Positions 249-63,604 of a stretch of DNA of 64,000 nt are shown here, in pieces. Each line of letters begins with the position of its first letter. Position 1 is the first letter of the stretch. Position numbers and translations under genes: made by a program. The DNA lies in the NCBI GenBank assembly GCA_965637545.1, contig OZ281494.1, forward strand, positions 16,306,001-16,370,000, in the 5' to 3' direction. Below the pieces are notes generated by a model. It did not search any database and had not been told where the DNA came from. It saw only the letters and a program-made list of their open reading frames with translations. The DNA comes from Phallusia mammillata. Its lineage: Eukaryota.

Positions 249-3200
249 CTCAAATTCTTGACGAAATGCAGCATAGTTATTGGCGCACTTTTTGAAGTAA
301 ATCCGTTCAAGGTTTTTCTTTGACGTTGAAGAACTGTTTCCGATATTTTGGTAGGGAGACACATTACCATATTTCACTGCCTCTAAATAAACAAAACAGA
401 GCAATAATAATGTGTCAATTATTTTTGCTAAAATCGTTATGTTAACTCTTTTTTTTCTAAAATCTTTCATTTTATTGTCCTACCTGATTCGTTTTGCTCG
501 AGTATTCCATTTGAAGAATCTCGGTTCTAAACAAACATACATATCATAAACATCACACGCAGGTATAACTTCAAGCGAAGATATAACTTTACATTTGATG
601 CCACTGCTGTGCTTGCAGTTGTCACTGTCACACGACCTTCAGCATTTTCCGAATCTTAGCAAAACAAACAAGTGTTAGACTATTTAAATCTTAAATATAT
701 GTCACTTAGCACTGCAACAGCAACAACTATTTCCATACCATTTGTTTGAAAAGTGGCTCCCCCGGAACTAGTTTTGTCCCTTTTGCGCCTAAAACACGTT
801 TAGTAATTCTATAATTTTAGTGGTTATGTGTTACAGTTACATAGATTTTTAAATATAAGGCTAAATAAAGTAGCATAAGTTTGCTTTTCAAAATTTAAAG
901 AAAATTACCTTTTCCAAACGATAATTACCAAGACCAGCAAAAGAATAAGTACAATGACACCTCCAACAGCACCTGCAATTATTCCGATTGGTGCTCCCTC
1001 GTTTTCTTGCGATATTAATTCTGATTTATTACAAAATATTGTTAGCGTTTTCAGGACCGAAAGCGCTAGAAATTATTCAGTTACCAGTTTCTCTTTTAGT
1101 TTGATTTGTTGTTATAGTTTGAACTGTTGTTGGAACGCGTACAACACAAAAACCAACTTCAACAGGACCGATAGTACGTTTGCAATGGATCACGTACAAC
1201 TGAAGCCAAATGCAGATTTAGTTACAAAAACCGTAATTAAAATTTTATATTTTTACCTGAAGTGTGTAGGTGTAGGGTACAAGTTCAGTCAGATTAAGTA
1301 CTGTGTGTCCACTTGAAACATTTTGGGTTGCTATAGTAACATTTTCACGAATACGATTGAATCGTACCTAAAAATATAAACAATTTTGTATTGCCCATCT
1401 CTAACCAGTTCTTAAATCACACAATTTCCTTGAATCAAATTTGTCCTTGAAAAAATGCATTCTGTGATCTTTCAAATACAATTATCGCAGTACACACATG
1501 GTTGGTTTTGCTTAGAACAATTAATATTCATTGCGAATAATAAAATTCATTGCGAATGTATCAAATCTGAAAACATCTTTAAATGTATACGAGGACATAC
1601 CTGGTAACCGTTGACTCCTTTACGATTATTTGATGATGGAATGTAAACAGCACATGGTGTTTGTTTTGTTATATTAGCACCAACCACTGATACAGGCGAA
1701 GAGGTTTTCACTGTCGTTTGGGCAACAACTGTTTCGCATACTGCAACTCTCGTCGTGAGCTGTCGTAAACAAATAACAATTAAAAATATATTGCATGTGA
1801 CAAACCATAAGGTTCTGTAAAAAATATGTTAAAATAACTGCACGTTGATAAATTTCTGAAAGTATGTGGTATACCTCAATTCTGTACATTGTGTTGTATT
1901 GTAATCCTCCGATTGAAGTTGAACCCGTCTCAAATATTGCATTTGTTACAGTCGAGTGATTGGTTGAGACAGCTTTCAACTGTAAGTAAAGCAACTGATA
2001 TGTAAAAAGCAGAAAAAGTAGTTTCATAGATTAAAATGTAAGATTTTGTGACAACTAAGGTACCTGCAGCTAACAAGGCCCATTAAAAAACTATTGTGTA
2101 TAACTGAAAAACCATTTAACCGTTCCAGGCCAAATTCGGCATGATTATTGCAGAGGTTGATATTAAACATCCATTAGATTTTGAGGGCGTTTGCAAGTTT
2201 TGTTTTTGTAGGATAACAGTTTAAAAAAAGTTAAAACTTGGGCCTTAATACATACCTATGCTGTTAATTAAGCCCTACATTTTCATGTTTTTAAAAATAG
2301 TCTAGAAACCAATCAGACTCATTTATACTTTGCTTCGGTCAAATAAAAGTTCAACAAGCAACGTTATTAACTCATATTACATATATACTGTTAACTAAGA
2401 CATATAACTGTTAATCTGAAGGTACTAATGAAAAGAATAAACGACCCCTTGACATTTGGTAACCAAAAATACTAAATGAAACATTACTTCTACAAACATC
2501 TTATTCGGACTTTTATCTCCCTAAGAAAGCAAAAAAAGCAAATTTTTTGCATATCAGTCGCCTTTAGTATAAAAGACACTTGAGAAAATGACAAATTATC
2601 GTTGGGCCTTATTGCAAGCAATGGCTGACAAACAAAACCGTAATAAAATTCATTTGAAGTAATTATTTTTTCCAGATCGGATAATGCTCCAATAATTAAA
2701 GTAAAATGACCCCATTACTAATATATCTTAATAAGTTTTCATTTTGACAACACAACCTTTCCATTTTTGTTACCAATTTTAACAAAAAATAATAAAAAGT
2801 TGAAAATAAACACTTCTTAATTTGGATTGGTCATGATAATAATTACACATAACTTTCAGGTCCAAAACTTTGTAAATCATTTTAAGTACATATATATTTT
2901 AAAATTACATCAAAACGACAGCTTTTTTTCTGGCACATAAGACAATATGAGCAGTGGGCCTTAATTATTACCTTCCGGGCCTATATACCTTCAGGTACCT
3001 TAATTTACCTGCACTGGAGTGTTGCTCTGTTGTTTTAACGGAATATAGTTGGTTGTCCAGTTTACTCGAATGGTGTCAGGGTTGCAAGTAGAAGGGCGGG
3101 CGTTAACTGTAACTATAAAAGCAAGTAAATTTATTAAAATAACGCTCAAAGTTGGGTTATAAGTGTTACGAGCTGCACTTATATGGAGAAAACGGTGTGC

Positions 3201-4766
3201 ACTGTCTGCAGTAAGTTGTTTTTAGATAACTACTAATTAAGTAAACAATATATAAGAACTGAGGATACGTAAAACAAATTAGCTAATTATAACTTGCAAC
3301 CATCGATTATATTATTATTAGTCTTGCAAACAAACACCAGGCAGAAGACTGTTTCGCTTTCACGCCTCCTATGTCAGCGCTTACCAAACTGCTATGTATT
3401 AGAAATTTTCAATTACCATAGGTTTTGACTATAAACGGAAGCTTTCGTTTTGATAAGTGAATCTAATTGCCTACCTCTGCTCAAGACCTTTTGTGCAAAA
3501 TAATAATTTCATAGGGGGCGATTTTGATTCAGAGTCAAGGGGGACGATTCGCAAAAAAGGGTTTAAGACCACTGTATCACAGCGTAGGTAAGTATCATCT
3601 TTAATATCATGGTTCTTTGTAACTTACATTCTAACTGACAAGCATAATACCCATATACACCAGTACACTGCTTTGTAGTATCTACCCAAGCTTGTTCATA
3701 TTGCAATGCGCTTTGCATGTAATGCGCTGAATCAGGTTGTATTGCTTGATAAGTTTCCACAAAAACTCTAAAAACTGAAGAAAAAAAAACAATAATTTTC
3801 ATTTTAGATTTTTTAAATTAATTACTAAAGATTTTCAACAAAACAATTATGAGCTGTATTCGCCATAACGCCAAGATCTTTTCTACTCTTGAACTTGCCA
3901 GGTAAGAACAAAGATTCCCATCTTCTATGGTACGGCGTCGAATTGTTGTCTTTGTTTTTCAACTTCGAAGAACTATCGTTTGCTCGGTAATTAAAAACTT
4001 CCTTAAATTTTGTAACATCTATACCGCTTCCGCCATACAAAACAAATCCCTGAATCCAACCTGGTGCAGAATTTCCTTGTTGCAAAATTAGGCGGTTTTC
4101 ATAACGTGGTACAACTCACCTGATTCATCATTGCAATTTGTTTTTGATGTTATCCACCATCTTTTATTTTTTAAGTGGGCTTGTGTTTTGCAAAATCTTA
4201 CCTGGTTCAATCCCGTGCCACTTCTGTAACAATGGTAACATGATATGATATATGTCGTAATTTAACAGCTATTTGCGTACGTTTTATACAAATGAATAAC
4301 TTTTGTAAATTCCTGGGGTTGCGTGGTAAAATATCCCAGTTTTGCTCCACCAATGTTTGATACCCATACTTTCTGTACATCTACAAATAAACAAAAGCAA
4401 TTTACTCCTTCCTTGTTAAGGGCGACAAAACGACCTGATTCAATTATTCAAGCGTTTACACTAACCTCCCAAATACATTTTATTCGCAGTGCTAATGAGT
4501 TTTTCATGAACGGCCGGATTGGAAATGTTGGCAATTTGGCCACCTTTTCCAGCACATCTTAATTTTACTGTGTTTCCATCGACAACTTCACTCGACAACT
4601 GAAATACTTGATTTCCTACATTAAAGATGGAATTGCAAGTTTCTGGTGAAACAAGCAATTGATTAAGTGTGAACCCTGCAAAACCCTGTTCGTTTTTATC
4701 CTTACCTTGAGTATTAGCTCCGTAAAATAATAACATTAACAACAATAGCACAAATATTTCCATCAC
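249..4766 (-). CDS. Gene A: 5' part (16 exons) of a C-type lectin/FN3 receptor protein tyrosine phosphatase; continues beyond the left edge
   Basis: Exons checked in phase: signal peptide 4706-4763/4766 ([19 protein letters not shown]), CTL exons 4466-4642, 4281-4380, 4120-4223, 3899-4060, 3628-3774, then FN3 exons ([11 protein letters not shown]; GLQYNTMYRIE; ELVPYTYTLQ), TM 909-1020 ([27 protein letters not shown]) and juxtamembrane exons down to 249-382 (ending FRQEFE). Exon-for-exon paralog of gene B; base 1 aligns with about 34428. The PTP domains are inferred from B and are not in the window. Confidence 0.85.
2058..3000. mobile_element. Non-autonomous TIR element (Tc1/mariner-like MITE) in intron 7 of gene A
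   Basis: Imperfect TIRs of about 24 bp (AGGTACCTGCAGCTAACAAGGCCC and GGGCCTATATACCTTCAGGTACCT) flanked by TA on both sides. Absent from the equivalent short intron of B, C1 and C2. Confidence 0.75.
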
Positions 4767-5106
4767 ACCTCCAACTTACTGTAAAGAAACTCTAAGTCTC
4801 AAAACTGTATGTTCATAACAAGGAAATACTACAAAGGCGTCGGGCATGCTAGCAGTGTTTCGGTCGTCTTGCGTCATTGGACGACGCAACAATATTGTGT
4901 GGTGCGTCATGCACATTCAAAGACATGGCACAAACGGGTATGGTGACTTTTATTCATTGAGGTTGAGACATAAATAACTGTGATTCAGTGGAGTTGCTCA
5001 GTCACGTACTAGAATTTTTCAACCTCACTCATAGTGCCCACCTTTATTTATTGTAAAACAACATTAGAACTTGGCGGTGACAAGTTGCAATAACATTAGT
5101 TTTTAG

Positions 5107-5534
5107 TAGTGATGCACCGAAGTTTCGGTTGGCCGAAACATTTCGGCCGAATCCGCTGTTTTCCAATGTTTCGGTTTCGGCCCGAACTTTTTTGAAAATT
5201 CGGCCGAAACCGAACTTTTTTGTTGCATGGAATTAAGGCCTTAAATTTCATTTACGCCCATACGAAACATCAATAATTAACTATTTGTTGTATCTATGAA
5301 ATACCAGCCACGTTGTCTGCAAAATATTAGATGTTTAGCAAAGTTTACCCAGTGTGAAAGTGATTTTAGTCTGTCAAAATTGAGTTCACTCGCATCAACA
5401 ACACAAGGTTCAGTTGAAACCATCCAAAAAACGGGGATTTTAGGTTCGGCCTGATTCGGCCGAAATTATTCGGCCTCATGGCCGAATATTCGGTTTCGGC
5501 CCGAACCTTTTTAGGCGGGTTCGGTGCATCACTA
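5107..5534. mobile_element. hAT-type MITE
   Basis: TIR TAGTGATGCACCGAA ... TTCGGTGCATCACTA, near-perfect 8-bp TSD (GTTTTTAG/GTTTTTAC) and internal GGCCGAA repeats. Empty site in the duplicate near 39280. Confidence 0.8.
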
Positions 5535-5870
5535 GTTTTTACAGTTAAAATTTATTGGAGTGATCAAAACATTGTTGTTTGTTTGGATGCAAATCAAAAA
5601 GAAAAACTATCTGTCGTCGTTTGCAACAAAATAACTCATTTTTGTAATGTTTTTGACATCAATGATTACAAGCAGACTACTTCTTTTGTTGTTGTTTTGT
5701 TCGCATGTTTGTGGCCGCCACTGGAATTAGTTGTTTACAGATATGTAGAAAACTCGTTCAAACAAAACAAAATTATAAACACCATCAGATATATGCTTGG
5801 ACACATCAATACATTACAGCATCAAAATTATTTGATTTTAAGAGCCACAGCATTTCTGCAACGTTAACAG

Positions 5871-6852
5871 CTACATAACATCGTAGCGACAAAGGGGAAC
5901 GCCCCCGACAAATGTATCAAAGTTCCACATTCCAGTGAGAGTGATTGGGACATTCGGTTTTGTGGCAACCGTCCATCCAACATTTTCCCCACGAGACCCA
6001 GGAAATCCATTGGCCCACTCTTCGTACACTGGTCCGCCGTTAAGACTTTGTAATTGCCCATTCTACACAAGAACTCATATTATTTGCCGGTTGGAAGCTT
6101 GTTGTTATTCAAAATTGAAGAGAAGGTTATGTAAATAGCTTCACCTGATAAGTTGACCCGAGCCAGACTTCAACGACATTGTTGGAGAGTTTGTCAAGAT
6201 AGACATTCCATGTTTTTTGAATGTATGTGTACAGTACTTCATACATTTCTTGGTTTTCGATGTCAACCAGCGTTCCGCCCTGGTAACTGCAGAGATCAGC
6301 TGCTGCTTGCTTGCTTCCACCCGCATTATAGGAAGCAACAATTAGCGGCAGGTGGTAGCAATAACCATTGTAGACGATTCCAGAACAATTGAGCTTGGCT
6401 TAAAGTAGGGTGAAGTTTAGTGTGTGTAATATAATTAAAAACATGATGGCCCAGCTTTAAGGTCGGCTTTGAACTTTAGACTAATTGAGATGTTTTTGAT
6501 CTATCGGCACCGGCTCCTTTTTTTTTGGGGGGGGGGGGGCTGGTTGAGAACCACTGTTATAGAGATTGGTCGCTATAATAAGACAACTACCTTGAACGAT
6601 CGATTCAATTCGACGATCTATTTCACTCCAGTCAGGTCGATTAGCTTGTCCTGGAGGTCCAACCGGTCCCTGTTTTCCAGGTGGGCCTTGGGGCCTCACT
6701 GGACTACCGCCCGCGTTTCCACTTTGTCGGTTAAAAATGCTTTGCACTGATCGGCAGAACATGTAATTTCCATCATTCTGTCCTTTGACTACTACCAGAC
6801 TGGTTGAAATTAACAGGCAATACGATAGTAGCATTTTAAAATGTAATCCCAT
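5871..6852 (-). CDS. Secreted collectin-like protein (signal peptide, short collagen Gly-X-Y, neck, C-type lectin), 3 exons, 235 aa
   Basis: Exons 6591-6852, 6145-6398 and 5871-6062 join in frame. Motifs: GPPGKQGPVGPPG; CSGIVYNGYCY; ADLCSYQGGTLVDIEN; EVWLG; GMWNFD; GVPLCRYDVM*. Confidence 0.85.
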
Positions 6853-6908
6853 GGTTACCTTTAAAATATAAATTTTTTTAGGAACAAATCAGGACTAAAA
6901 TGAAATGT

Positions 6909-7070
6909 CAAGTTTTACGAGCTCTTCTGGCAAATGTAATTTTTGTTCTGACGTTTCGACATCCTATACAGGTCGTCTTCATCAGGGTCACGTCGAAACG
7001 TCGGAATAAAATTACATTTGCCAGAAGAGCTCTACAAACTTGATATTATGCCTGGCAGCAATAGCTTATG
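6909..7070. mobile_element. Miniature Penelope-like insertion (inverted terminal-repeat remnant with hammerhead core)
   Basis: Same sequence as the ends of the 10644-12020 element, arranged as an inverted repeat; 13-bp TSD TAAAATGAAATGT at 6896-6908 and 7071-7083. Confidence 0.8.
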
Positions 7071-8614
7071 TAAAATGAAATGTGTTTGAACTGCACCCCC
7101 GCGAAACGCACAGTTACAAGCTCGAGTTCAGACGATTTACGCTACATGTTTAATGATTTCTAATCAGTGTTTAACACAGTCCTATGGAAGATGTCCTGAT
7201 TCAAAAACATGTTTTTGAGATTACTTTGCGCTTAAATAAATATTGTCCTCGATCAACTAACACAGATAAGAGAGGGTTCGTGAACACATCACGTAGTACA
7301 TAACAAATAAACAGATGCGCTGGATTGACTAAACGTTTTACCACTTGACTAGTTGACTTGCCTGACGACGGCGACAGTGTTTCACATAATAATTTTACAA
7401 CTGACCAGGCTGACTTTCCAAAAAGTGTTTGAAAGAGCCTGAATTTTATTGTAAGTTGCAAGAGGCTTGAAATTTGTCGGAAAACCTGCCTTTTTCAATT
7501 GTTGGTAGGTAAAAGCTCTTTCGTACAGAATTCCATAGGTTCCGTTTAACAATAAATAATCGATTATTATAATCAGTTTAATTTTCACCAAACAGAATAC
7601 AAAAATCGCAAAACTACTGCATTAGTCTCGTTCACATTTTGACCTACATGTCAAACAAATCTAAAACTAATGCATAGGTCAAATTCGTAGTGGAGGAACG
7701 CCAGTTTGACAATTGATCATACAAGATGAACATAAATTCCTTTCTGGGATCACCCTTGAAGCTCCCATGGAATTCGGTGATCATGGCACACTTATTTAGA
7801 CTTTGTATACACCTGCAACATCTAACCCATAGTTTATCCTTGACGTTAACAAATTCAAATGTGTCTCTAATCCGGTACAATATGGAATTTCATCTCATAA
7901 AAATCCCTCAAAGGCACACTAGAAACATTAACTGCTGGAAAACAAAAAGCGGAAAACATGACGCCACCGTAACTCAGTTGAAGCAAAATTTCCCACTCCT
8001 GTAGCTCTTAACCTTACCCTTACGAACCCCGATCAAACAGGGGGTACGAGAAAATTTTCGCGCCAGGCCATTCGGCCAAGTTCCTGCCCCCACCTTATAT
8101 AATCCTATCGATAATTTTAAGAACTGTGCCTGTTTAACGCCACCTAACGGTTTTGTTTTTTGAAATGTTGTTCGTTGTAGTTCTACCTATGGTGACAGTA
8201 GTTCTACCAATAAACAACTATTCTGTCTGCTACAACATCGGTTTAAGATCAACCATATAATGACAACATTAAACGTAAAACGTCGAACTTTTATGCTGCT
8301 GTTTAGTCCACTTTGCTAAAAAATGTTTTATAGGACTTAACGTCGATAATAGTTCGCTTGAAATATTTGATGACATATTGTTTATTGTTCATATGTGCAA
8401 GCTAGAATCCAAGCTTTCTGATCATTATTGAAAAGTGTTAAAGTCATTTAAGCAATACTGTTGTGCGTTAATGAAAGATGTTTCTTTCCCTTTTTCAGCC
8501 TAAAACATCTTTGTTTTGTGTGGTCATTACTGACAACTCTAGCTTGTCAGAACCATTGCTGTTTGTTGTTAGTGGAAAACACGCATCGCTGTAATTTATT
8601 GTGAAAATTACATA

Positions 8615-8915
8615 GTAGTAACTTCATCGTGCCGAAGACATCCAGCAAGTTCATCGTGGTAAATTCATCGCACGGCAATTTAATCGTGGTATGTTACATT
8701 GCAGTAGTTTTATCGTGATAGTTTCATGAAAGCAATTTTATCGTTGTAGTTTTTCATAAGTTAATTTCACAACAGTATTTTCATCGTGATAATTACATCG
8801 TTGTAATTTCGTTTTGGCAAGTTCATCGCATAGTAATTACATCGTAGCAATTGCTTCGTTATAATTTTTTCTCGTGGCAGATTGTTGCAATTCTATCGTG
8901 GTAATTTCATGACAT
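8615..8915. repeat. Degenerate minisatellite (TTCATCGTGGTAA-like units)
   Basis: More than 10 imperfect CATCGT-centred units; second copy at about 42362-42705. Confidence 0.7.
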
Positions 8916-9331
8916 TGCAGTAGGCTATAATAGCACAATTTTTTAACACAATTATTTGTGTACATTTTCGAAAGAGTTACTTGCTCCACCTATTTGTCGA
9001 ACTTTGTTGGATGTAAGTTCCCGTGTTAATATGTTTTCGGTGATTTGGCCGTTTCTGGCCCCCGATTTACTCCATAAATCTTAGCAAGTAGAACCATTTC
9101 ATTCTTCCCTCCTCTGATCAGTCACATTACTTTTCTCCAATTTTGTGTAAGGACCTGAATGTCAAACACATATAACAATCTTGGCGGTACAAAATTGGTA
9201 AATAAAATCGGTTACCATTGCTGATCAATTACAATTGTGGTTTAGTAAAAAGACAATTAACGTTGAGCAGTTGTTTTAGAAACAAAATTGTGTGAACGCC
9301 AAAGTAAGACAATATTGGTCTTTATAGAAGT

Positions 9332-9779
9332 CGGCTCTCAAACTGGTGTCCGCGGTCCCGTAGGGGTCCGCCACACGACTTCAGAGGGACCACGAGAAGC
9401 CTAACGTATTTCTGCAATCATATGTAATATCAGCTCTTACGACTGCATACGCAAAAATTACATATGTAAACGAGTATTCTTTGACAAAAAGTGGTACATT
9501 GCTTCATTTCCACTAACAAACACAGGCGATTGTTCGCGCACCATATTTATATTGTTTCATTCTTTTTTGTGACGTAATGAATTGCCCTTGAAAAAATCCC
9601 ACGCAAAGTGATGTGACAGCACTAAACTAAATTCTTTCGAAAGAAATAAACTAACTTTTAGTTTTTGACTCAACAGTTTTGTTTTGCCAAGATATATTCA
9701 GTTGTATAAATATATTTAGCTTGGACCGCGAGTGCTCGAAAAAATGGGCAAGGGACAAAAAATTAAAGTTTGAGAACCG
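9332..9779. mobile_element. Old hAT-like MITE
   Basis: TIR-like ends CGGCTCTCAAACT ... AGTTTGAGAACCG, related to the CAGTGGTTCTCAAACT element at 18090. No clean TSD. Confidence 0.55.
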
Positions 9780-10643
9780 CTCAGTACAGTTAATTGAGTG
9801 GCCATTTTTCTAACTAAGGCAATGATGGAGTAAACATGAATTTGTTCGATTTGAGACAACCTCACATGGAAATAGATCTATTGGACAAACATTTTGTAAA
9901 ACTTTCACATACTAATCAAAAAAATCTAAATCAATTCTAAAAAGTGTACGCATTTTAAATGGTCACATAGTTAAACGTGTCCAAGATACTTATTTATTGT
10001 TCAGTACACGATTTAGCCTATATGAACACATTTAAATACAACCATGTATGCAAATAACTTCTACCAGTTCCAAACATTTTTTAAAGCGTAGATACGTTGA
10101 AGAAGCACCATGCCCAGACGTAGTAGCTGCCTAGATGGTGTAATCACACGATTGCGTTGTTTTTAGCAAACCAACTAAGTCTCCCGAATTTCACGCTTTG
10201 TACTTCACCGGATATGCCCCTTTGTTAGCAATTAAACAGCTTCTGTAGACTAAGACGTGAGATAAGATTAGTTGGTCTTTCAACGCCAACGGAGCGATAA
10301 TTGGTTTTCGAATTGTGCCATTGTTCGCGTAGCAGTGAGAAAAAGGTTCTAGTGAGTCCTTCACACGCTTCGGTGATCACGATTGCTTAACTTTAGATTT
10401 TAGCGTTTGCTGTTGTGATTGATGACTGAATGACACATCCATAAGTCAGTGCTAAAGTTCAAAGCTGATTAGATAGAACATAACGACCCACTTGGCTTGT
10501 ATAGCCATCACTGATAGTGGACTCGTTGCATTTGAACTAAAACTCAATCGGTTGCTTTATGTTAAAATAAAAATGTGTGTATAATTATATTTATTACGGG
10601 CTATATGTTTGATATAAGCGGGTCGTAAACGTACACATTTAAG

Positions 10644-12020
10644 TTTAAAGAGCTCTTCTGGCAAATGTGATTTTATTCCGACGTTTCGACGTCCTATACA
10701 GGTCGTCTTCATCAGGGTAAATAACACTGAATGCGACTAGTACAGTGCACGATAAACAAAGGAAAAAAAGAATGGAACGCAAGCTTTTAACATTCAGGGG
10801 AAGCTTTTACCAGCAGGTTCAAGGCACAGCGATGGGTTCCCCGGTCTCCGTGGTTGTCGCAAACATGACAATGGAAGCGCTTGAGGAAAAAGCCTTATCA
10901 ACATTTGCTAACCCACCAAGATTCTGGCGGCGATATGTTGACGACATTTTTTGTGTCATTGCTAAGAACAAGGTTGAGGCATTTCTACGGCATCTCAACG
11001 AGGCGCAACCAGGCATTCAGTTTACCATGGAACTCCAATCGGTAAACTGTCTTCCATTTTTAGACGTTCAAGTCACAAGAACCGATGACGGTGTCTTGTA
11101 CTCGAGAGTGTACCACAAGCCAACGAGTACCGGCAGGTATCTCAATTTTCGATCTCATCACCCCACATACCAGAAAAGAGGGTGGTTTGTTCCCTAAAAG
11201 ATCAGGCACGACGCTTGTGCACTCATAGCGACGACTGCGAGGCGGAACTGGCTAAGGTTCGCAAAGCCTTGAAATATAACGGCTACCCCAACTGGATTCT
11301 CCGTGATGGACGGGCAACGTGTCCCAAACAGGTGACCCATCCAAAAACAGAGGGTTTTTGTGACACTTCCGTACATACCGAAATTGACGGATATTCTACG
11401 GCGTATGTTGCATGACTTCGGCGTAGCGGTTGGCGTTCAACCTGCTAATACTCTCCGCAAGCTACTGAGTCACCCGAAAGATCCAATCGACACCCTTGGA
11501 CAACGTGGTGTTGTATATTCTATTCCCTGCGCCGAGTGTCCGTTAATATATATCGGGGAGACTGGAAGGTCACACAACACCCGCCGAAAAGAAGAAGTCG
11601 GCCCTGTCCAATCACGCGGTATCACAATGCCACCGCATTGATTTCAATGCGGCGTCTGTTGTGGGCCGGGAGCCTGACTACAGGAAAAGACTATTTCTTG
11701 AGTCATGGAATATTCACCAACGGGGCAACACAATAATGAACATCAAAACAGACGTGATGCTTCCAGCGTGCTACAGGCACCTGCTTAAAGATTAGAGGGC
11801 CAATCATTTGTTATCGCGCGGTGTTTTTTTTTGTTGCGTTGTGACGTGCTTGCGTTCCATTCTTTTTTTCTTTGTTTATCGTGCACTGTACTAGTCGCAT
11901 TCAGTGTTATTTACCCTGATGAAGACGACCTGTATAGGACGTCGAAACGTCGGAATAAAATCATATTTGCCAGAAGAGCTCTTTAAACTTGATACTATGC
12001 CTGGCAGCAATAGCTTATAT
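10644..12020 (+). mobile_element. 5'-truncated Penelope-like retroelement (RT fragment and GIY-YIG), frameshifted, with inverted terminal repeats
   Basis: GTAMGSPVS, RYVDD, LPFLDV, VYHKPTSTGRYLNFRSHHP and LPYIP RT/thumb motifs; GVVYSIPC...YIGETGR GIY-YIG. Inverted repeat of about 150 bp at the two ends. 13-bp TSD GTACACATTTAAG at 10631-10643 and 12021-12033. Confidence 0.92.
11907..11958 (+). ncRNA. Minimal type I hammerhead ribozyme in the Penelope terminal repeat
   Basis: CTGATGA, stem II GACG/CGTC with inner CCT/AGG, GAAAC, then GTC cleavage triplet; stem I TTATT(TA)CC pairs with GGAATAA. An inverted copy lies at 10674-10724 (minus strand), and both recur in the second element. Confidence 0.8.
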
Positions 12021-12335
12021 GTACACATTTAAGACAGATTAAAAAGGCAGAACTTGTAAAATCATTAGAAGCTTTAAATGTAGCATAACTGACATACCGG
12101 ATCCTTAGATTTTTTCTGCCAGCAAGACCGTAGATATTTTTTTCGCCTATTAATCATTGATTTCCAACAGATAAATAAACAGGTAGTGGCGAAAACAACT
12201 TTTACACTGGTAAGTCGCATTTCATCATTTGTGGTGCAGCAGTTCGTGGTGGCCAGAAATCAAGTTTAGCAAAACTTTTTTTGTATTACATTGACCTGAA
12301 CACGTTTCAAAAAGCCCAGACATTTATAAATTCTC

Positions 12336-15300
12336 TTAGTGGCATGGTGCTGTTTTCATGTATACAGTTCGCTTGATGTCGACACTCTCATACCCATCAT
12401 CTCCTGCATATATTAGTTGTGTAGAAACATTTATAAAAGCGTTTCCAAAAGCATAAATTTTGAAAACAAAAAACGTTATATCGTACAAAGTTGATCAACA
12501 AGTGACGTGATAAACAATGTAAAAACTTGACCTTACTAAAAAGCATTACTACTTATTCCAGCATACCTTCGGTTTTGTTGGTTACTGCCTCGGAACTGTT
12601 TTTCTTTTCGTTTCTGAAAAAACGTTTATTCGTAAGATTGGATACGCAGGAGATTTTTTACGTGCAAGTTCAAATGCAAAGGTCGCCAGGCCTATTAAAG
12701 GCGTAATACCGAATCAAGCCGGTCTTCCAGGCATTGCCATATGGCAAGGAACAGACTAGAAAAATACAGCCTGCGGTGGGATCCGAACCCACGACAGGAG
12801 TCGTTCCAGAAGTTGCGTTGTACCAACTGAGCAATACAGGCACCGTTGTCTTCTTGTATGCTGTCAGCTACGTGTCAGCTTCGTAGTAGCAAAGGTAATT
12901 AAAGTTTATAATAAAACCTGCAACAGATTACCTTTTCCAAAAATAATTACGCAGACGAGCACAATAATGAAAGCGATGGCACCTCCAGCAACACCTGCAA
13001 TTATTCCGATAAAAGCTTGTGGTGTCAAATCTGTAATGACAGAATAAATTGTGAGCATTTTAAAGAAGCAATAAACTTATTTCTATCACGTAGTTACTAG
13101 TTTCGTTTCCGTTTAAAGTTGTAGTTGTTGGGTGTTGTACAACGCAAGAACCAATGTCAACAGGTCCGATAACACGTTCGCAATAAAACATGTACAACTA
13201 AAAACAAAATGCATGGTTTCAGTTACAAGACCCGGGGGTTATTAAAAAGTTTTATTGTTTCTACCTCAAAATTGTAAGTATAGGAGGCAATTTCAGCTAG
13301 ATTAAGTACTGTAAATCCACTTGAAATGTTTTTGGTTGCTACAGTAATATTTTCAACCACGCGTTTCAATCTTACCTAGAAAACACGTGATTCAACGGAC
13401 AAAAATTATCTCAAAAAGACAGAATATTCCAAAAATCGTACATGCATCAGTAGCAACATTGGGTGTGTTTAGATTTTTAACAATTTTAGTTTTATTGCGA
13501 TAGTTTTGTCGGTAAATCTAAACATATTTAGGGTTATGTTTTCACATATGTTTTCATTCATTCGACAGGAACCTCGCACCAAATTCTAAAAAAACCTTTT
13601 AAGTAGAAATGTTTTCCTGTGCTCAATGAACATTGGGTTTTAAACAATAAATTTGTCAGTTCTTACACTTTCTTTCAGCCCATCGCATCACACATTATAA
13701 ACTCACATTCAGTTTTTTTCTTCTATATAATAGTTCAACTTTAATTAAAAGGTTTTATTGGTTTACTTCTAAAACTTACCTGGTAGCCCCTAACTCCTTC
13801 ACGGTCATTTGATGATGGAATGTAAATGATACATGGTGTTTGTTTAGCTACTTTGGAACCGACAACAGAGGCAGACGAAAAGGTTTTCACTGTTGTTTGA
13901 GCAACAACTAAACGGCAATCAGCAAATCGCGTCGTGAGCTAACAAACGGACTACAGTTAAACGGAGTATTTTTGTTGTCTTTTGTCATAAAAACATAAGG
14001 TTAGGCTACAAACATAAGCTGAAATATTAACATTATTTGGACAAATATTGTACTTTTTGAATATACCTGTATTTGGTATGTTGTATCGTATTGTAAACCC
14101 TGTAAGGAAGCTGAACCTATTCCAAATGTTGAATTTATTTCTGCCGTTTGATAACCATCTGTAACAGCTGCCACCTACGTAAATCAATAAATTTGTTAGT
14201 GAAAATGCAAGCAACGTTTTTGAAACAAAAATTTGACATGCACGAAAATAAGACCTCCACTGGTGTATTGCTCTGTTGTATTAACGGAACATACTTGGTT
14301 GACCAATTTACTCGAATGGTGTCAGGGTTACAAGTGGAAGGCTGGCCATCAATCGAAACTGAAAAGAATTGTTTCAAGTCAACCACCAACGCCATAACAA
14401 GAACATACGTTTTTTCACATAATGACATTTCAACATTATTCTGGTATAGCACTTTGACATAACTTACATTGATACTGACAGGCGTAATACCCGTATACAC
14501 CAGTACACTGTTTTGCGGTGTCCATCCATGTATGCTCATACTGCATTGCGTTCTGGATGCAATTCGCAGAACCAAGTTGGGTTGCTGCATTGGTTTCTAC
14601 AAACACTCTAAAAACTAAAATAAAATCACGTGTTATATTATTTTAAACAGTTCTGTTAAACTAAAACATCCGTTGATTAAGACCTTGTGAATTTAGTTTT
14701 ACCTTACCAGGTAAGAACAAAGATTCCCATCTTCTATGGTACGGCATAAAATTGTTGTCTGTGCTTTCCAACATCGAAGAATAATCGTTTGCTCGGTAAT
14801 TAAAAACTTCCATAAATTTTTTAACATCTCTCCCATTTCCGCCATATAAAAGAAATGCTTGCATCCAGCCTGGCGCAGAATTTCTTTGTTACAATGATTG
14901 GTAAAGTTGCAAAATAGACTCACCTTTTAAAAAAAATAGACTCACCTTTTTCATCATTGCATGTTGTTTTTGATGTTATCCACCACCTTTTATTTTGTAC
15001 ATCGTCTTTAGTTTTGCAAAATCTTACCGGTTTTAATCCATCATTATTTCTGTAAGAATGGTAGCATGTTATGATGTCTGTGGTAATTTTACAATTAATT
15101 GCTTACGTTTTATACAAATGAATAACTTTTGTGTAATTCTGGGGTTGCGTGGTAAAATATCCCAGTTTTGCTCCACCAATGTTTGATATCCATACTTTCT
15201 GTGCATCTACAAATAAACAAAATCAATCTACTTATTTCTTGCGAAAAAAACCTGATTTCAATTATTTCAGCGTTTACACCAACCTCCTAAATAAACTTCA

Positions 15301-15581: not shown

Positions 15582-15734
15582 TGCACCTGTTTCGTTTTGT
15601 TCGAAATCTATCGCCTTAGACTCTTACCTATACACATAACAAGGAAATGTGGTTGTAAAGAGTTTTCGGCTAGACCGTAAAGCCTTAATAACTTTGATTG
15701 TTTAGTGCTGCTGCATGCGTCACATTTTGCAACT

Positions 15735-52569: not shown

Positions 52570-52884
52570 GTACACATTTAAGACAGATTAAAAAGGCAGA
52601 ACTTGTAAAATCATTAGAAGCTTTAAATGTAGCATAACTGACGTACCGGATCCTTAGATTTTTTCTGCCAACAAGACCGTAGATATTTTTTTCGCCTATT
52701 AATCATTGATTTCCAACAGATAAATAAACAGGTAGTGGCGAAAACAACTTTTACACTGGTAAGTCGCATTTCATCATTTGTGATGCAGCAGTTCGTGGTG
52801 GCCAGAAATCAAGTTTAGCAAAACTTTTTTTGTATTACATTGACCTGAACACGTTTCAAAAAGCCCAGACATTTATAAATTCTC

Positions 52885-55800
52885 TTAGTGGCATGGTGCT
52901 GTTTTCATGTATACAGTTCGCTTGATGTCGACAGTCTTATACCCATCATCTCCTGCATATATTAGTTGTGTAGAAACATTGATAAAAGCGTTTCCAAAAG
53001 CATAAATTTTGAAAACAAAAAACGTTATATCGTACAAAGTTGATCAACAAGTGACGTGATAAACAATGTAAAAACTTGACCTTACTAAAAAGCATTACTA
53101 CTTATTCCAGCATACCTTCGGTTTTATTGGTTAATGCCTGGGAACTGTTTTTCTTTTCGTTTCTGAAAAAACGTTTATTCGTAAGATTGGATACGCAGGA
53201 GATTTTTTTACGTGCAAGTTCAAATGCAAAGGTCGCCAGGCCTATTAAAGGCGTAATACCGAATCAAGCCGGTCTTCCAGGCATTGCCATATGGCAAGGA
53301 ACAGACTAGAAAAATACAGCCTGCGGTGGGATCCGAACCCACGACAGGAGTCGTTCCAGAAGTTGCGTTGTACCAACTGAGCAATACAGGCACCGTTGTC
53401 TTCTTGTATGCTGTCAGCTACGTGTCAGCTTCGTAGTAGCAAAGGTAATTAAAGTTTATAATAAAACCTGCAACAGATTACCTTTTCCAAAAGATAATTA
53501 CGCAGACGAGCACAATAATGAAAGCGATGGCACCTCCAGCAACACCTGCAATTATTCCGATAAAAGCTTGTGGTGTCAAATCTGTAATGACAGAATAAAT
53601 TGTGAGCATTTTAAAGAAGCAATAAACTTATTTCTATCACGTAGTTACTAGTTTCGTTTCCGTTTAAAGTTGTAGTTGTTGGGTGTTGTACAACGCAAGA
53701 ACCAATGTCAACAGGTCCGATAACACGTTCGCAATAAAACATGTACAACTAAAAACAAAATGCATGGTTTCAGTTACAAGACCCGGGGGTTATTAAAAAG
53801 TTTTATTGTTTCTACCTCAAAATTGTAAGTATAGGAGGCAATTTCAGCTAGATTAAGTACTGTAAATCCACTTGAAATGTTTTTGGTTGCTACAGTAATA
53901 TTTTCAACCACGCGTTTCAATCTTACCTAGAAAACACGTGATTCAACGGACAAAAATTATCTCAAAAAGACAGAATATTCCAAAAATCGTACATGCATCA
54001 GTAGAAACATTGGGTGTGTTTGGATTTTTAACAATTTTAGTTTTATTGCGATAGTTTTGTCGGTGAATCTAAACATATTTAGGGTTATGTTTTCACATAT
54101 GTTTTCATTCATCCGACAGGAACCTCGCACCAAATTCTAAAAAAACCTTTTAAGTAGAAATGTTTTCCTGTGCTCAATGAACATTGGGTTTTAAACAATA
54201 AATTTGTCAGTTCTTACACTTTCTTTCAGCCCATCGCATCACACATTATAAACTCACATTCAGTTTTCTTCTTCTATATAATAGTTCAACTTTAATTAAA
54301 AGGTTTTATTGATTTACTTCTAAAACTTACCTGGTAGCCCCTAACTCCTTCACGGTCATTTGAGGATGGAATGTAAATGATACATGGTGTTTGTTTAGCT
54401 ACTTTGGAACCGACAACAGAGGCAGACGAAAAGGTTTTCACTGTTGTTTGAGCAACAACTAAACGGAAATCAGCAAATCGCGTCGTGAGCTAACAAACGG
54501 ACTACAGTTAAACGGAGTATTTTTGTTGTCTTTTGTCATAAAAACATAAGGTTAGGCTACAAACATAAGCTGAAATATTAACATTATTTGGACAAATATT
54601 GTACTTTTTGAATATACCTGTATTTGGTATGTTATATCGTATTGTAAACCCTGTAAGGAAGCTGAACCTATTCCAAATGTTGAATTTATTTCTACCGTTT
54701 GATAACCATCTGTAACAGCTGCCACCTACGTAAATCAATAAATTTGTTAGTGAAAATGCAAGCAACGTTTTTGAAACAAAAATTTGACATGCACGAAAAT
54801 AAGACCTCCACTGGTGTATTGCTCTGTTGCATTAACGGAACATACTTGGTTGACCAATTTACTCGAATGGTGTCAGGGTTACAAGTGGAAGGCTGGCCAT
54901 CAATCGAAACTGAAAAGAATTGTTTCAAGTCAACCACCAACGCCATAACAAGAACATACGTTTTTTCACATAATGACATTTCAACATTATTCTGGTATCG
55001 CACTTTGACATAACTTACATTGATACTGACAGGCGTAATACCCGTATACACCAGTACACTGTTTTGCGGTGTCCATCCATGTATGCTCATACTGCATTGC
55101 GTTCTGGATGCAATTCGCAGAACCAAGATGGGTTGCTGCATTGGTTTCTACAAACACTCTAAAAACTAAAATAAAATCACGTGTTATATTATTTTAAACA
55201 GTTCTGTTAAACTAAAACATCCGTTGATTAAGACCTTGTGAATTTAGTTTTATCTTACCAGGTAAGAACAAAGATTCCCATCTTCTATGGTACGGCATAA
55301 AATTGTTGTCTGTGCTTTTCAACACCGAAGAATAATCGTTTGCTCGGTAATTAAAAACTTCCATAAATTTTTTAACATCTCTCCCGTTTCCGCCATATAA
55401 AAGAAATGCTTGCATCCAGCCTGGCGCAGAATTTCTTTGTTACAATGATTGGTAAAATTGCAAAATAGACTCACCTTTTAAAAAATAGACTCACCTTTTT
55501 CATCATTGCATGTTGTTTCTGATGTTATCCACCACCTTTTATTTTGTACATCGTCTTTAGTTTTGCAAAATCTTACAGGTTTTAATCCATCATTATTTCT
55601 GTAACAATGGTAGCATGTTATGATGTCTGTGGTAATTTTACAATTAATTGCTTACGTTTTATACAAATGAATAACTTTTGTGTAATTCTGGGGTTGCGTG
55701 GTAAAATACCCCAGTTTTGCTCCACCAATGTTTGATATCCATACTTTCTGTACATCTTCAAATAAACAAAATCAATCTACTTATTTCTTGCGAAAAAACC

Positions 55801-56125
55801 CTGATTTCAATTATTTCAGCGTTTACACCAACCTCCTAAATATACTTCAGTCGAAGTGCTAACAAGTTTGTCACGAACGATTGGATTGGAAATGTTAGCG
55901 ATTCGACCTCCATTTCCAGCACATATTAATTTTGCTGTGTTACCATCAAAAACTTCACTTGACAAACGAAACACTTCATTTTCTACACCGAACACTGACT
56001 TACAAGTTTCTGGTGAAACAAATAATTAGTTTACTTATTTGCTTAAATAAAACTTAATTTAAATTTTATATACCTTGAGCATTAGCCCCATAAATTAACA
56101 TTAACAAAAGCAGAGAGATTTGCAT
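52885..56125 (-). CDS. Gene D2: CTL-CTL-FN3-FN3-TM receptor with short hemITAM-like tail
   Basis: Near-identical to D1, but the TM exon ends in phase (IIFWKR). Tail RNEKKNSSQALTNKTEGDDGYKTVDIKRTVYMKTAPCH*. Confidence 0.85.
53215..53390 (-). mobile_element. tRNA-derived SINE (duplicate of 12665-12840)
   Basis: Identical tRNA-like head at 53320-53390. Confidence 0.7.
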
Positions 56126-60326: not shown

Positions 60327-63300
60327 TCATAAAGTGAGGTTTTCGTAAGCTGATACTTTTTTCGGATCTTCGTAGTGATGAACAGTGTCTGCAATGTTTT
60401 AAAATATACGTATTGCATTCACTGATCCGATTACTTTTAAAAAGTTTAAAGATTTTGTTATTACCTTCGTGGCATGGTGCTGTGTTAATGTACACAGGTT
60501 CCCTAATGTCTACAGTCTCATACCCACCATCTCCTGCATATAAAGTTGTGTAAACACAGTTTTAAATGCAATTTTAGAACAAAACACTTTTTAAAAACAG
60601 AAAAAGTGGAATTGTGTCAGAAAATGGTGTAAAAAGCGAATACAAAGAATACAAAAAACCTTCACCTAAAAGCATCACTACTTATTCCGTACCTTCTGTA
60701 TTGTAAGTAGCTGCCTGAGAACTGTTTTTCTTTCTGTTTCTGAAAAAATGTTTATCAATTTATTGTAAGATTGGATATGCAGTACATTGTTTTTCGTGCA
60801 AGTATTTATATTTATATTTTAACCTAAATATATTACCTTTTCCAAAAGATGATTACACAGACCAGCACAAGAATAAGAGCGATGGCACCTCCAGCTACAC
60901 CTGCGATTATTCCGATGGGTGCTTCCCCGTTTTCTTGCGATATTAATTCTGATTATAAATATATTGTGGGCGTTTTCAAGATCCAAAAACCGTAGAAACT
61001 ATTCAGTTACCACACTTTCTTTTACTTTGATTTGTTGTCGTAGTTTGAACAGTTGTTGGGTGACGTACAACACAAAAACCAATTTCAACAGGACCTATAG
61101 TTCGCGTGCAATGTATCACGTACAGCTAAAGCCAAATGCAGATTTAGTTACAAAACCTGTAAATAGGAAGTTTATATGTTTACCTGAAATGTGTAGGTGT
61201 AGGGTACAAGTCCAGTCAAACTAAGTACTGTGTGTCCACTTGAAACATTTTGTGTTGTTATAGTATCATTTTCACCAATACGATTGAATCTCACCTAGAT
61301 AATTCGAGATTAGTGTTGTAGGACTGCAGGAGAAAAAAACTTTTAGCTTGAAAAAAATAACAACTTTGTGTCGACCATTTGTGACCACTTTTTGAAACCC
61401 GATATTTCCTTGCAGAAAAAAATGCTTTCTGCAATCTTTCAAAAACATTTATGTAGTACACATACGGTTGGTTTTACTTAAACAATTATAATAAAATGCA
61501 TTGCGAATGTATCAAATCTCAAAATATTCTTGAAGGTATACGACGACATACCTGGTAACCGTTGACTCCTTTACGATTATTTAATGATGGAATGTAAAGG
61601 GTACATGGTGTTTGTTTTGTTATATTGGCACCGATCACCGATACAGGCGAAGAGGTTTCCACTGTCGTTTGGGCAACAACTGTTTCGCATCCTGCAACTC
61701 GCGTCGTGAGCTATCGTAAACAAATAACAAGTAAAAATATATTGTATACAAGTTCTGTTAAAAATTGGTTAAAATATTTACACCACTTTAATTTGAAGAT
61801 ATATAATTTTTTGAAGATATACTGTATACCTCAATTCGGTAAATTGTGTTGTATTGTAATCCTCCGATTGAAGTTGAACCCGTCTCAAATAATGTATTCG
61901 TTACAGTCGAGTGATTGGTTGAGACAGCTTTCACCTGTAAGTAAAACAATTGATAAAAAAGCAGAAAAACTAGTTTCAAAGAATAAAATTTAGGAACTGT
62001 GGACAAATAATTTACCTGCACTGGTGTATTGCTTTGTTGTTTTAGCGGAACATAGTTGGTTGTCCAGTTTACTCGAATGGTGTCAGGGTTGCAAGTAGAA
62101 GGGCGGGCGTTTACTGTAACTAAAAGCAAGCAAATTTAATAAAAGAACGCTCGAAGTTTGAAAAACTTATCTGTTGAGCAACTTATATGAAAGAAACGGC
62201 AAGCACTGTCTTCAGCAGCTTTTTTTTCGATAACTACTAATTGAGTAAACAATATTAGGAACTGAGGATACGTAAAACAAATTAGCTAACTGTAACTTAC
62301 AACCATCGATTATATATTATTATACGTCTTGCAAACAAACACCAGACAGAAGATTGTTTCGGGGATTCGCAAGAAAAGGGTTTAAGACCACTGTATCACA
62401 GCGTAGGGAAGTATTATCTTTAGTATCATGGTTCATTGTAACTTACATTCTAACTGACACGCATAATACCCATATACACCAGCACACTTCTTTGAGGTAT
62501 CTACCCAAGCTTGTTTATATTGCAGTGCGCTTTGCATGCAATCCGCTGAATCAGGCTGTGTTGCTTGATAAGTTTCCACAAAAACTCTAAAAACTGAAGA
62601 AAAAAACAATTATTTTATTTTAGATGTTTTAAATTTATTACTAAAGAGTTTCAACAAAACAATTGTGAGTTGTATTCACAATAACGCTAAGATCTTTTCT
62701 ACTCTTGAACTTACCAGGTAAGAACAAAGATTCCCATCTTATATAATACGGCATCGAATTGTTGTCTGTGCTTTTCAACATCGAAGAATGATCGTTTGCT
62801 CGGTAATTAAAAACTTCCTTAAATTTTGTTACATCATTCCCTGTTCCACCATACAAAGCAAATCCCTGAGACCATCCTGGTGCAGAAAATTTTTGTTGCA
62901 AAAATAGGCGGTTTTCAAAACGTGTTATAATTCACCTCCTTCATCATTGCAATTTGTTTTTGATGTTATCCACCACCTTTTATTTTGTATGTGGTCCTGT
63001 ATTCTGCAAAATTTTACCGGCTTCAATCCCGTACCACTTCTGTAACAATGGTAACTTGTTATGATGTCTGTAGTAATTTTAACTTAATGCTTACGTTTTA
63101 TACAAATGAATAACTTTTGTAAAGTTCTGGGGTTGCGTGGTAAAATACCCCAGTTTTGCTCCACCAATGTTTGATATCCATACATTCTGTACATCTACAA
63201 ATAATCATGAAATAATATGATTCTACAAATAATACAAATAAAACAATTTACGCCTTGTTTGTTAAGGGCGACAGAACAACCTGATTTCAACTATTTAAGC

Positions 63301-63604
63301 GTCTACACCAACCTCCTAAATACATTTTAGTTGCAGTGCTGATGAGGCTTTCACGAACGGTTGGATTGGAAATATTGGCAATTCGACCTCCTTTTTCAGC
63401 ACATCTTAATTTTGCTGTGTTTCCATCGACAACTTCTGTTGACAATTTGAACACATGATTTCCAACACTGAACCCGGAGTTGCACGTTTCTGGTGAAGCA
63501 AATGATTAGTTTACTTATTTTCTTAATAAAACCTAATTTAAGTTTGATATACCTTGAGCATGTGCCCCATAACCTATCATTAACAAAAGCAGAAGGATTT
63601 CCGT
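60327..63604 (-). CDS. Gene C2: ITIM-tail receptor with different 5' exons from C1 and ACG at the expected start position
   Basis: Exons 6 to last are near-identical to C1. Exon 1 (63553-63604, 52 nt, D-type length) reads ACG-EILLLLLMIGYGAHAQ. Exon 2 starts ETCNSGFSVGNHVFKLSTE. Confidence 0.78.

Follow-up and report, generated by a model that had tools for sequence, protein, structure and literature searches.

A tandem family of putative lectin-like receptors in the ascidian Phallusia mammillata with tandem-phosphatase and four-tyrosine cytoplasmic formats

A receptor family with one ectodomain plan and two cytoplasmic formats

Seven paralogous receptor genes, here called A, B, C1, C2, D1, D2 and E, lie on the minus strand of a 64,000-nt stretch of the Phallusia mammillata genome (OZ281494.1, 16,306,001-16,370,000). 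This stretch is referred to below as the window, and all positions are given within it. The locus is probably a lineage-specific tandem family of type I receptors, each with a signal peptide, a C-type-lectin-like region of ~230 aa, two FN3-like domains, one transmembrane (TM) segment and one of two cytoplasmic formats. The first format, in A and B, would be a tandem phosphatase resembling those of RPTP-alpha and RPTP-epsilon, and the second, in C1, C2 and E, a short tail with four conserved tyrosines; D1 and D2 probably carry truncated or decaying versions of the second. An earlier note on this DNA had described the same genes as one lectin-FN3 ectodomain coupled to three alternative signalling outputs, and how its claims fared is told with the evidence that bears on them. 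The genes are as follows.

249..4763, minus strand: gene A, phosphatase-type, cut by the window start, 16 visible exons
12335..15581, minus strand: gene D1, 14 exons, ectodomain intact, 1-nt deletion near 12942 in the TM exon
19770..23019, minus strand: gene C1, intact, 15 exons, 537 aa, supported by the model and by RNA joints
24857..30480, minus strand: gene E, divergent, intact, 15 exons, 553 aa with no stop, same phases, modelled exon by exon
31216..38365, minus strand: gene B, complete receptor tyrosine phosphatase, 29 exons, 1104 aa, no internal stop
52884..56125, minus strand: gene D2, 14 exons, 512 aa, in frame, tail stopping at ...GDDGYKTVDIKRTVYMKTAPCH
60327..63604, minus strand: gene C2, 15 exons, tail the same as that of C1, ACG at the start-codon position

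The shared exon phases that the earlier note had reported hold throughout: the 12 exons that encode the ectodomain and the TM segment have the same positions and phases in all seven genes. The model of C1 was built by hand from a three-frame view, and its exons were then projected onto the other genes. The lengths of exons 1-12 in A, B, C2, D1 and D2 stay within 9 nt, except for the TM exon of the D genes, which is ~13 nt shorter, and all introns are GT-AG apart from a single GC donor at exon 5 of A. The layout is seen most clearly in C1, with a signal peptide, a cysteine-rich region of ~230 aa (exons 2-6), two beta-type domains of ~90 aa (exons 7-11), the TM exon (20391-20280) and three tail exons (20182-20136, 19976-19908 and 19831-19770). 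When B, C1 and E served as tblastn queries against the window, the only additional family pieces to appear were the cytoplasmic exons of A and an orphan fragment at 23265-23626.

Only B, C1 and E look fully intact. The visible parts of A comprise the signal peptide, the lectin region, two FN3-like domains, the TM segment and four exons between the membrane and the protein tyrosine phosphatase (PTP) domains, ending in FRQEFE. Its lesions are a conserved Cys changed to Tyr (SAHY), the GC donor of exon 5 and loss of the first donor of exon 11, with a phase-1 GTAACT donor 15 nt downstream of the lost one. D2 has a conserved Cys changed to Phe (ADFRLV), and C2 has ACG where the other genes have ATG, with an in-frame stop upstream. 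The lesions of D1 lie in the TM exon and tail and are described with the tails.

Two side observations concern the exons themselves. In C1, exon 11 is followed by a pair of phase-1 donors, GTAAAA and GTAACT, with 15 nt between them (20469-20454); A (1100-1085) is without the first, and the D genes have only the second. Given this alternative donor, the receptor stalk may be 5 aa longer than in the C1 model. In intron 2 of E, stop-interrupted stretches at 29700-29830 (minus strand) resemble lectin exon 3 (GVYIKIG..., ...ILRIGAKPTT). These stretches are likely to be duplicates of an exon that have since decayed; the in-frame exon is 29514-29388.

The phosphatase format of A and B

In the model of B, a single open reading frame encodes a signal peptide, one TM helix and cytoplasmic phosphatase domains, and the protein has one hydrophobic segment (residues 446-479). 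The ectodomain and TM segment span 38365-35324. After the TM exon, four juxtamembrane exons (35212-34678) lead into a canonical membrane-proximal domain (34412-32836) and then into a second domain with the C-terminus (32778-31216), written here PTP D1 and PTP D2 to keep them apart from genes D1 and D2. The tandem phosphatase that the earlier note saw in B is confirmed by Pfam, whose Y_phosphatase family (PF00102) matches two separate places, in PTP D1 with E = 1e-23 and in PTP D2, at 31367-31555, with E = 1.5e-12. All catalytic motifs are complete in PTP D1 (NRY, DYINAS, WPD, HCSAGVGRTG and the Q-loop MVQSWEQF), the signature HCSAGVGRTG being split after HC by a phase-2 intron, and to judge from these motifs the domain should be catalytically active. 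PTP D2 is degenerate, with WIKDE instead of WPD, as is usual for membrane-distal domains.

The best-scoring solved structures for the PTP D1 exons of B are PTPRE and PTPRA, followed by PTPRS, LAR and CD45, and for the PTP D2 exon the best alignments are those to the D2 domains of PTPRE and PTPRA. By these pairwise scores, in which the R4 enzymes give the best-scoring solved chains for both domains, the module appears to be RPTP-alpha/epsilon-like. Enzymes of this class are known more as activators of Src-family kinases than as plain inhibitors. B ends in FDLYANYR, which places a tyrosine in a YxN context five residues before the end. In PTPRA, Tyr789 is required for GRB2 binding (PMC7021549) and can also sequester the Src SH2 domain (as cited by PMC7021549), and the C-terminal YANY site of B looks like an analogue of it.

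A had been credited with a tandem phosphatase by homology to B. This stands for its four visible cytoplasmic exons (788-739, 654-593, 526-484 and 382-249), which are intact and the last of which is 93% identical to its counterpart in B; the catalytic domains fall outside the window.

One conserved four-tyrosine tail and its truncated derivatives

C1 and C2 end in SAYENL, as the earlier note had stated, followed by TL and the stop codon, and the splice chain that leads there is seen in RNA contigs. Their tail has five tyrosines, in TYNTE, GGYETV, VYINT, HHYEDP and SAYENL. E had been taken to end after DDGYETV, but it splices to a 15th exon (24912-24857) that is homologous to exon 15 of the C genes, ends in HHYEEPNKVFVYENY before the stop and keeps the terminal tyrosine. 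The complete tail of E reads ADDGYETV, EYINT, HHYEEP and FVYENY, with the last two motifs in this exon. A tail of ~60 aa with four tyrosines, D[D/G]GYETV, YINT, HYE[D/E]P and YEN[L/Y], is common to C1, C2 and E. Between C1 and E the tail core is 63% identical, compared with 27% for the lectin region and 19% for the FN3 region. Because the tail core is so much better conserved than the ectodomains, the tail is under purifying selection, and its conservation is the strongest functional signal in the window.

The tail of the D genes is a truncated version of the C/E tail, in which exon 14 closes with TAA instead of GAA, the GT of its donor is gone and exon 15 has decayed; its second tyrosine is without its Asn (YMKT). 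In D1, the 1-nt deletion at ~12942 in addition puts DDGYESV and the whole tail out of frame, giving an end in ...IIFGKETKRKTVPRQ and a stop. The first motif differs between D1 (YESV) and D2 (YKTV) despite the 98% identity of the two genes.

The earlier note had read these tails as the outputs of a paired immune or allorecognition locus: C would be inhibitory, with SAYENL as an ITIM (immunoreceptor tyrosine-based inhibitory motif) for SHP; D and E would be activating, with DDGYxxV as a motif for Syk like the hemITAM, the single-tyrosine relative of the ITAM (immunoreceptor tyrosine-based activation motif); and A and B would be built-in phosphatases. Several features agree with this. The genes are clustered in tandem with similar ectodomains and different tails, SAYENL fits the consensus (S/I/V/L)xYxx(I/V/L), DDGYxxV resembles DEDGYxxL, and divergence is biased to the exons of the first lectin domain. 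Moreover, the ascidian Botryllus has receptors of the immunoglobulin superfamily that bear ITIM and hemITAM motifs (PMC12582321).

The split between activating and inhibitory genes nevertheless fails at several points. C1 and C2 also bear the first motif, as DGGYETV (GDGGYETV), so that the motif does not set D and E apart from C and is present in the supposedly inhibitory genes. D2 and E do carry the DDGY motif and the ITIM pattern occurs only in C, as claimed, but the motif of D1 is out of frame. The ITIM is a low-information pattern, expected, by a rough estimate, at ~3% per tyrosine, and it is not conserved: the homologous site in E is FVYENY, off the consensus, and D is without the site. 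What C and E have in common at the terminal site is YxN, as they do at YINT. The hemITAM is defined as [D/E]3-x-Y-x-x-L (PMC12582321), whereas GDGGYETV, GDDGYKTV and ADDGYETV contain no more than two acidic residues each and place Val at +3, and the N-terminal signal peptide and C-terminal tail are at odds with the type II orientation of hemITAM receptors. Furthermore, E keeps all four tyrosines, D has a cut-down C/E tail that is frameshifted in D1, and the change between YESV and YKTV in otherwise near-identical genes suggests relaxed constraint.

The TM segments also bear on this question. In paired receptor clusters, activating members typically combine a short tail with a charged residue in the TM segment, by which an ITAM adaptor is recruited. 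No charged residue is found in the TM segments of any gene here (IGIIAGVAGGAIA...), and the comparison with such clusters holds for the tandem genes, similar ectodomains and different tails but not for this feature. The spacing of an ITAM is present, with YETV, six residues and YINT, the +3 residues being Val and Thr rather than Leu or Ile; the pattern of YxxV, six residues and YxxT is kept in C, D and E. Because C and E share their tail and D is the same tail cut short, the family is better described as one conserved four-tyrosine tail with truncated derivatives than as ITIM genes set against hemITAM genes, and a locus with three outputs, as opposed to two formats, seems very unlikely.

As a separate observation, the TM helix of A to D holds a conserved small-residue motif, IIAGVAGGAIA (for example in the TM exon 20391-20280). 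Small-residue TM motifs mediate helix-helix dimerisation in other receptors.

Mosaic genes, gene conversion and a segmental duplication

The C genes connect the two formats. The ectodomain of C1 is 78-88% identical to those of A and B and 56-73% identical to that of D2, whereas its TM segment is 88% identical to that of D2 and 69-73% to those of A and B, and its tail is of the D/E type. The nucleotide similarity of C to A and B runs as far as the 3' end of the TM exon and stops there (~20254-20275). C is a mosaic of a phosphatase-type ectodomain and a D/E-type TM segment and tail. The central idea of the earlier note, that one ectodomain family sits on alternative cytoplasmic modules, is therefore upheld.

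Between C1 and C2, differences occupy 50 of 1166 positions in exons 2-10 against 12 of 1164 in introns 2-10 (Fisher p = 9e-7), and only one of 390 positions in the TM and tail exons. Point-mutational positive selection was considered as the cause of the exon excess and rejected: synonymous sites are raised too (synonymous divergence, dS, 0.108; ratio of nonsynonymous to synonymous divergence, dN/dS, 0.5), and most of the variant bases recur in A, B or D. For both of these reasons the pattern points to patchy gene conversion among the paralogues. One exon is an exception.

22378..22478, minus strand: lectin exon 4 of C1, with a hypervariable patch after a conserved Cys (FC-xxxxxxx-NKRWW), following the almost invariant exon 3

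In C1 this seven-residue patch carries a 3-nt deletion as well as nine substitutions unique to the gene, against a background that is 98% identical.

In the direction of transcription the order of elements is C2, D2, a long interspersed nuclear element (LINE), B, E, the orphan fragment of exons 1 and 2, C1, D1 and A. Self-comparison of the window reveals a tandem segmental duplication of ~40.5 kb, whose first copy and partner are as follows.

1..22921, no strand: copy 1 of the ~40.5-kb tandem duplication, matching 34428-63513 in the self-comparison

Gene order and self-comparison together indicate that the repeat unit is C - D - phosphatase gene, with E between the two units. The copies are 83-89% identical at the A/B end, and their identity climbs to 98.2% across the D and C genes (the last 12.6 kb).

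This high identity of the D-C pairs raises the question of whether C1/D1 and C2/D2 are two haplotypes of one locus that were assembled in tandem, so that the real locus would have five genes. In favour of such an artefact, the copies differ by lesions of an allele-like kind, and ascidians are highly heterozygous. However, the repeat unit also holds A and B, which are much less alike and have different indels, and the units are parted by unique sequence (E and the phosphatase half of B). A gradient of identity such as the one along the unit is what an old duplication typically shows once conversion has homogenised part of it. In addition, one copy has received an insertion.

42742..48149, minus strand: nearly full-length LINE retrotransposon, with a zinc-finger ORF1 (weak match), an endonuclease, a reverse-transcriptase C-terminus and zf-RVT

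The LINE interrupts copy 2 and bears a poly-A tail and a TTTTAACACA target-site duplication, and its open reading frames carry at least one frameshift. Because it has these hallmarks of insertion and is present in copy 2 only, it was inserted after the segmental duplication. Two uncollapsed haplotypes are thus a very improbable account of the seven genes, and a tandem family remains the favoured one. The frequent lesions and the orphan fragment show that the cluster undergoes birth-and-death evolution.

RNA evidence for the splice models

Four RNA data sets from the same organism, all of them small, were compared with 14600-20599, a stretch that runs from exons 1-5 of D1 across the spacer to exons 11-15 of C1. 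Contigs of runs X16 (295 nt) and X17 (252 nt) contain the C tail joints 20182/20280, 19976/20136 and 19831/19908, which have GT..AG ends on the minus strand and match the modelled exons 12-13-14-15 exactly. The joints in these contigs show that the TM exon is joined to the tail ending in SAYENLTL. The splice models are thus borne out from the C TM exon through exons 13-15, and for the D genes no spliced counterpart was seen; the 5' half of D1 has only two short, apparently unspliced RNA pieces. The X16 contig that spans the C tail enters intron 11 by 9 nt (20392-20400) and then stops, which suggests some unspliced or partly spliced RNA at this intron. Because this contig ends within intron 11, the junction between ectodomain and TM exon is not yet seen in RNA.

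The ectodomain fold

The earlier note had proposed an ectodomain of the form CTL-CTL-FN3-FN3-TM. Its TM segment stands, and PDB matches in the correct register agree with its domain types, which the single exons did not yield in Pfam. Searched against PDB sequences, the exon-2 profile matches only the carbohydrate-recognition domains of collectins (SP-A and SP-D) and mosGCTL, over beta1-alpha1 (E 0.04). Exon 2 of E has CLEC2I as its best match (E 0.2), exon 6 of E matches only Ly49C and NKR-P1A, with IFGARY...WRW on WIGLSY...WAW (E 0.15), and the exon-7 profile matches FN3 domains of neogenin and nothing else, at the Trp of the B strand (E 0.7-2.3). In each of these four marginal searches the top matches are thus C-type lectin domains or neogenin FN3, all in the correct register. 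C-type lectin domains are, by estimate, a small fraction of PDB chains, so that three independent lectin top matches are unlikely to be due to chance. The FN3-like domains have the size of FN3 (~90 aa each), and Pfam gives a weak match of exon 8 of E to Pur_ac_phosph_N (E 0.01), which we take to be an FN3-like fold.

Other searches added nothing to this. PDB profile searches returned no match for exon 6, only chance matches for exon 5 and only a chance match for exon 9, and the ESM Atlas search with exon 6 gave only irrelevant bacterial clusters with scores of at most 0.45. A profile of lectin exon 5 from all seven genes, run against 1.84 billion representative proteins, had three matches, all repetitive or spurious, with no true relative among them. 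No internal repeat emerged from hhalign comparisons of the first with the second lectin half or of FN3-1 with FN3-2, for which the alignments were too shallow.

The second lectin-like region is without a recognisable N-terminal half, and the Cys expected to close the first domain is missing; the lectin region may therefore consist of one full C-type lectin-like domain (CTLD) and a partial or very divergent one. QPD occurs only in C1, C2 and A, the other genes reading QPG (B), QLG (D1), HLG (D2) and PAK (E), and the WND position reads WVD, WTD, WMD or WKM, so that the signature of Ca2+ and sugar binding is not conserved across the family. By analogy with the lectin receptors of natural killer (NK) cells, the ligand need not be a glycan. 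Overall, the assignment of the ectodomain to lectin and FN3 folds is weakly indicated.

Evidence against, and a non-immune alternative

Several observations count against a functional two-format receptor family as set out above. Lesions in four of the seven genes (A, C2, D1 and D2) mean that the cluster may be partly non-functional, and the overall dN/dS of 0.3-0.7 gives no global sign of positive selection. When 20 single exons or open reading frames of the ectodomain (32-97 aa) were run through Pfam, neither Lectin_C nor fn3 was matched, and the PDB matches are individually non-significant (E 0.04-2). The junction of the TM segment and the phosphatase in B is given by the gene model only. 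RNA depth over the C tail is low (4-6), no spliced D transcripts were seen in the four RNA runs, in which D1 exons 1-5 were covered, and no full-length transcript was seen among the contigs over 14600-20599. The near-identity of the D-C pairs (98.2% over 12.6 kb), discussed above, belongs here as well.

Some of these observations would fit a family of adhesion, developmental or tissue-specific receptor phosphatases with no immune function, like the majority of receptor phosphatases, in which the short-tail genes are by-products of duplication, either decoys or decaying pseudogenes. The lesions in A, C2, D1 and D2, RNA that is low or absent in four runs and a dN/dS below 1 are all compatible with it, and modules like those of RPTP-alpha and LAR usually act in adhesion and neural development. 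Against the by-product part of this alternative, the conservation of the tail core between C1 and E, set against the divergence of their ectodomains, implies that purifying selection on the tail is strong. In addition, neither C1 nor E has a lesion, and the splicing of C is correct. We consider this alternative unlikely, albeit less so than the haplotype and three-output explanations, and keep to the reading of two maintained formats in what follows.

A possible way of working

If both formats are functional, they may act on each other. The lectin and FN3 ectodomain would bind a multivalent ligand and so cluster the receptors, whereupon Src-family kinases would phosphorylate the four-tyrosine tail. 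The tail could then dock SH2 proteins, of Grb2 type at the two YxN sites, of Src, Syk or SHP type at YETV and of Crk or Nck type at YE[D/E]P. The phosphatase paralogues would be brought to the same or a similar ligand by ectodomains kept alike through conversion, and there, like RPTP-alpha and CD45, they might prime Src-family kinases, or else they might dephosphorylate and reset the tails. Evolution of the cluster as a whole would proceed through duplication and loss of genes, through gene conversion and through the exchange of exons at the TM exon. This specific circuit of phosphatase and tail paralogues is a tentative proposal, doubtful at best.

The family may possibly have an immune role. 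A more far-reaching version would make the locus a germline recognition system of an invertebrate closely related to vertebrates, in which a single lectin ectodomain, kept similar among paralogues by gene conversion, is mounted both on an RPTP-alpha/CD45-like phosphatase and on a receptor-borne scaffold that is ITAM-like as well as LAT-like, with co-ligation of the two by a single ligand setting the system's own signalling threshold. We regard this version as quite unlikely.

Comparison with known receptor systems

The family is real and unusual, yet it is built from known kinds, namely a receptor phosphatase and a cluster resembling those of paired receptors. RPTP-alpha and RPTP-epsilon (PTPRA and PTPRE, the R4 enzymes) are like B in type I topology, tandem domains, complete PTP D1 motifs and a C-terminal YxN tyrosine. 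However, their ectodomain is very short, heavily glycosylated and without a folded domain, whereas that of B has ~450 aa of lectin-like and FN3-like sequence. CD45 (PTPRC) and other FN3-bearing receptor phosphatases share with B an FN3-type ectodomain, a TM helix and a tandem phosphatase, and CD45 sets thresholds for tyrosine-motif immune receptors, which resembles the way of working proposed here. On the other hand, CD45 scores below PTPRE, PTPRA, PTPRS and LAR, has no lectin domain and has no sister genes that share its ectodomain.

The paired clusters of vertebrates (KIR, Ly49/NKG2, SIRP, PIR and Siglec) likewise combine tandem genes and similar ectodomains with different tails, gene conversion, birth-and-death evolution and pseudogenes. 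In contrast, the family described here has no charged TM residue and no separate logic of ITAM adaptors, uses a phosphatase as an alternative module and does not conserve its 'ITIM'; its members are type I proteins, unlike the lectin NK receptors, which are type II. Dectin-1 and CLEC-2 share with it a C-type-lectin-like ectodomain and an acidic-Gly-Tyr motif (DDGY). They differ from it in type II topology, in a motif that lies near the N-terminus and in having an acidic triplet with Leu at +3, whereas the family here is type I and has at most two acidic residues, Val at +3 and three more conserved tyrosines after the motif.

Among ascidians, the Botryllus fester co-receptors FcoR form a multigene group whose tails contain ITIM, hemITAM-like (ADDVYAIL) and core YxxV motifs, and whose alleles or splice forms swap such motifs (PMC12582321). 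They belong to the immunoglobulin superfamily, however, and no lectin/FN3 ectodomain or phosphatase paralogues are described for them (PMC12582321). Ascidians have CD45-like phosphatases, Syk, SHP-1 and Grb2 but are without LAT and SLP-76 (PMC12582321). The tail of the C genes has likenesses to LAT-type scaffolds, with several YxN or YxxP docking tyrosines in a short unstructured tail and a terminal YENL, although LAT has no ectodomain and no sequence homology to the family beyond these motifs. LAT itself ends in a DYENL site for Grb2 and Gads.

A precedent for the domain combinations comes from fish: the CTLD catalogue of Fugu lists two predicted proteins, 'PTP-GMC1', with a lectin-like domain and a tyrosine phosphatase, and 'CFN3', with a lectin-like domain and FN3 (PMC514892). 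These are table entries only, and no tail-bearing sister genes are described for them (PMC514892). In ascidians, no described lectin-ectodomain receptor phosphatase was found in the literature. PTP-GMC1/PTPRQ is a single-domain enzyme of the R3 type.

Other features of the window

The window is AT-rich (~36% GC) and its introns are short. One further piece of the family lies upstream of C1.

23265..23626, minus strand: orphan copy of exons 1 and 2, a frameshifted gene fragment

It consists of a signal-peptide exon and a frameshifted lectin exon 2, is 79% identical to the 5' end of C2 and is the remnant of a further family member. An older reverse-transcriptase fragment with a weak RVT_1 match occurs at 10745-11641 and at 51288-52185 (both plus strand); because it is found in both copies of the duplication, it is older than the duplication. 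An (GCATGCAAA)n microsatellite lies at 31860-31900 (minus strand) in an intron of the PTP D2 region of B.

Between D1 and C1, three segments (17200-17400, 18000-18200 and 18800-19000) reach an RNA depth of up to 947. Their contigs have many loose ends and non-canonical 'joints' and resemble expressed dispersed repeats. Rfam and tRNA scans of the window, these segments included, gave no match. The 'share' of 0.09-0.14 in the RNA runs comes mostly from these expressed repeats and not from the receptor genes.

Significance

If the gene models hold, domains have been shuffled at one phase-2 intron, that which follows the TM exon, and one ligand-binding module has thereby been put both on a phosphatase and on a docking tail. 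Vertebrate immune cells reach this pairing with unrelated proteins, CD45 or CD148 on one side and ITAM receptors with LAT on the other. Should the germline recognition system outlined above turn out to be true, the locus would be a one-family version of the lymphocyte circuit of phosphatase and tyrosine-motif receptor, in a group said to lack LAT and SLP-76. The family would also be one of the rare cases in which a lectin-type ectodomain sits on a tandem receptor phosphatase, and it may offer a compact, testable system for asking how signalling through tyrosine motifs was arranged around the time when vertebrates arose.

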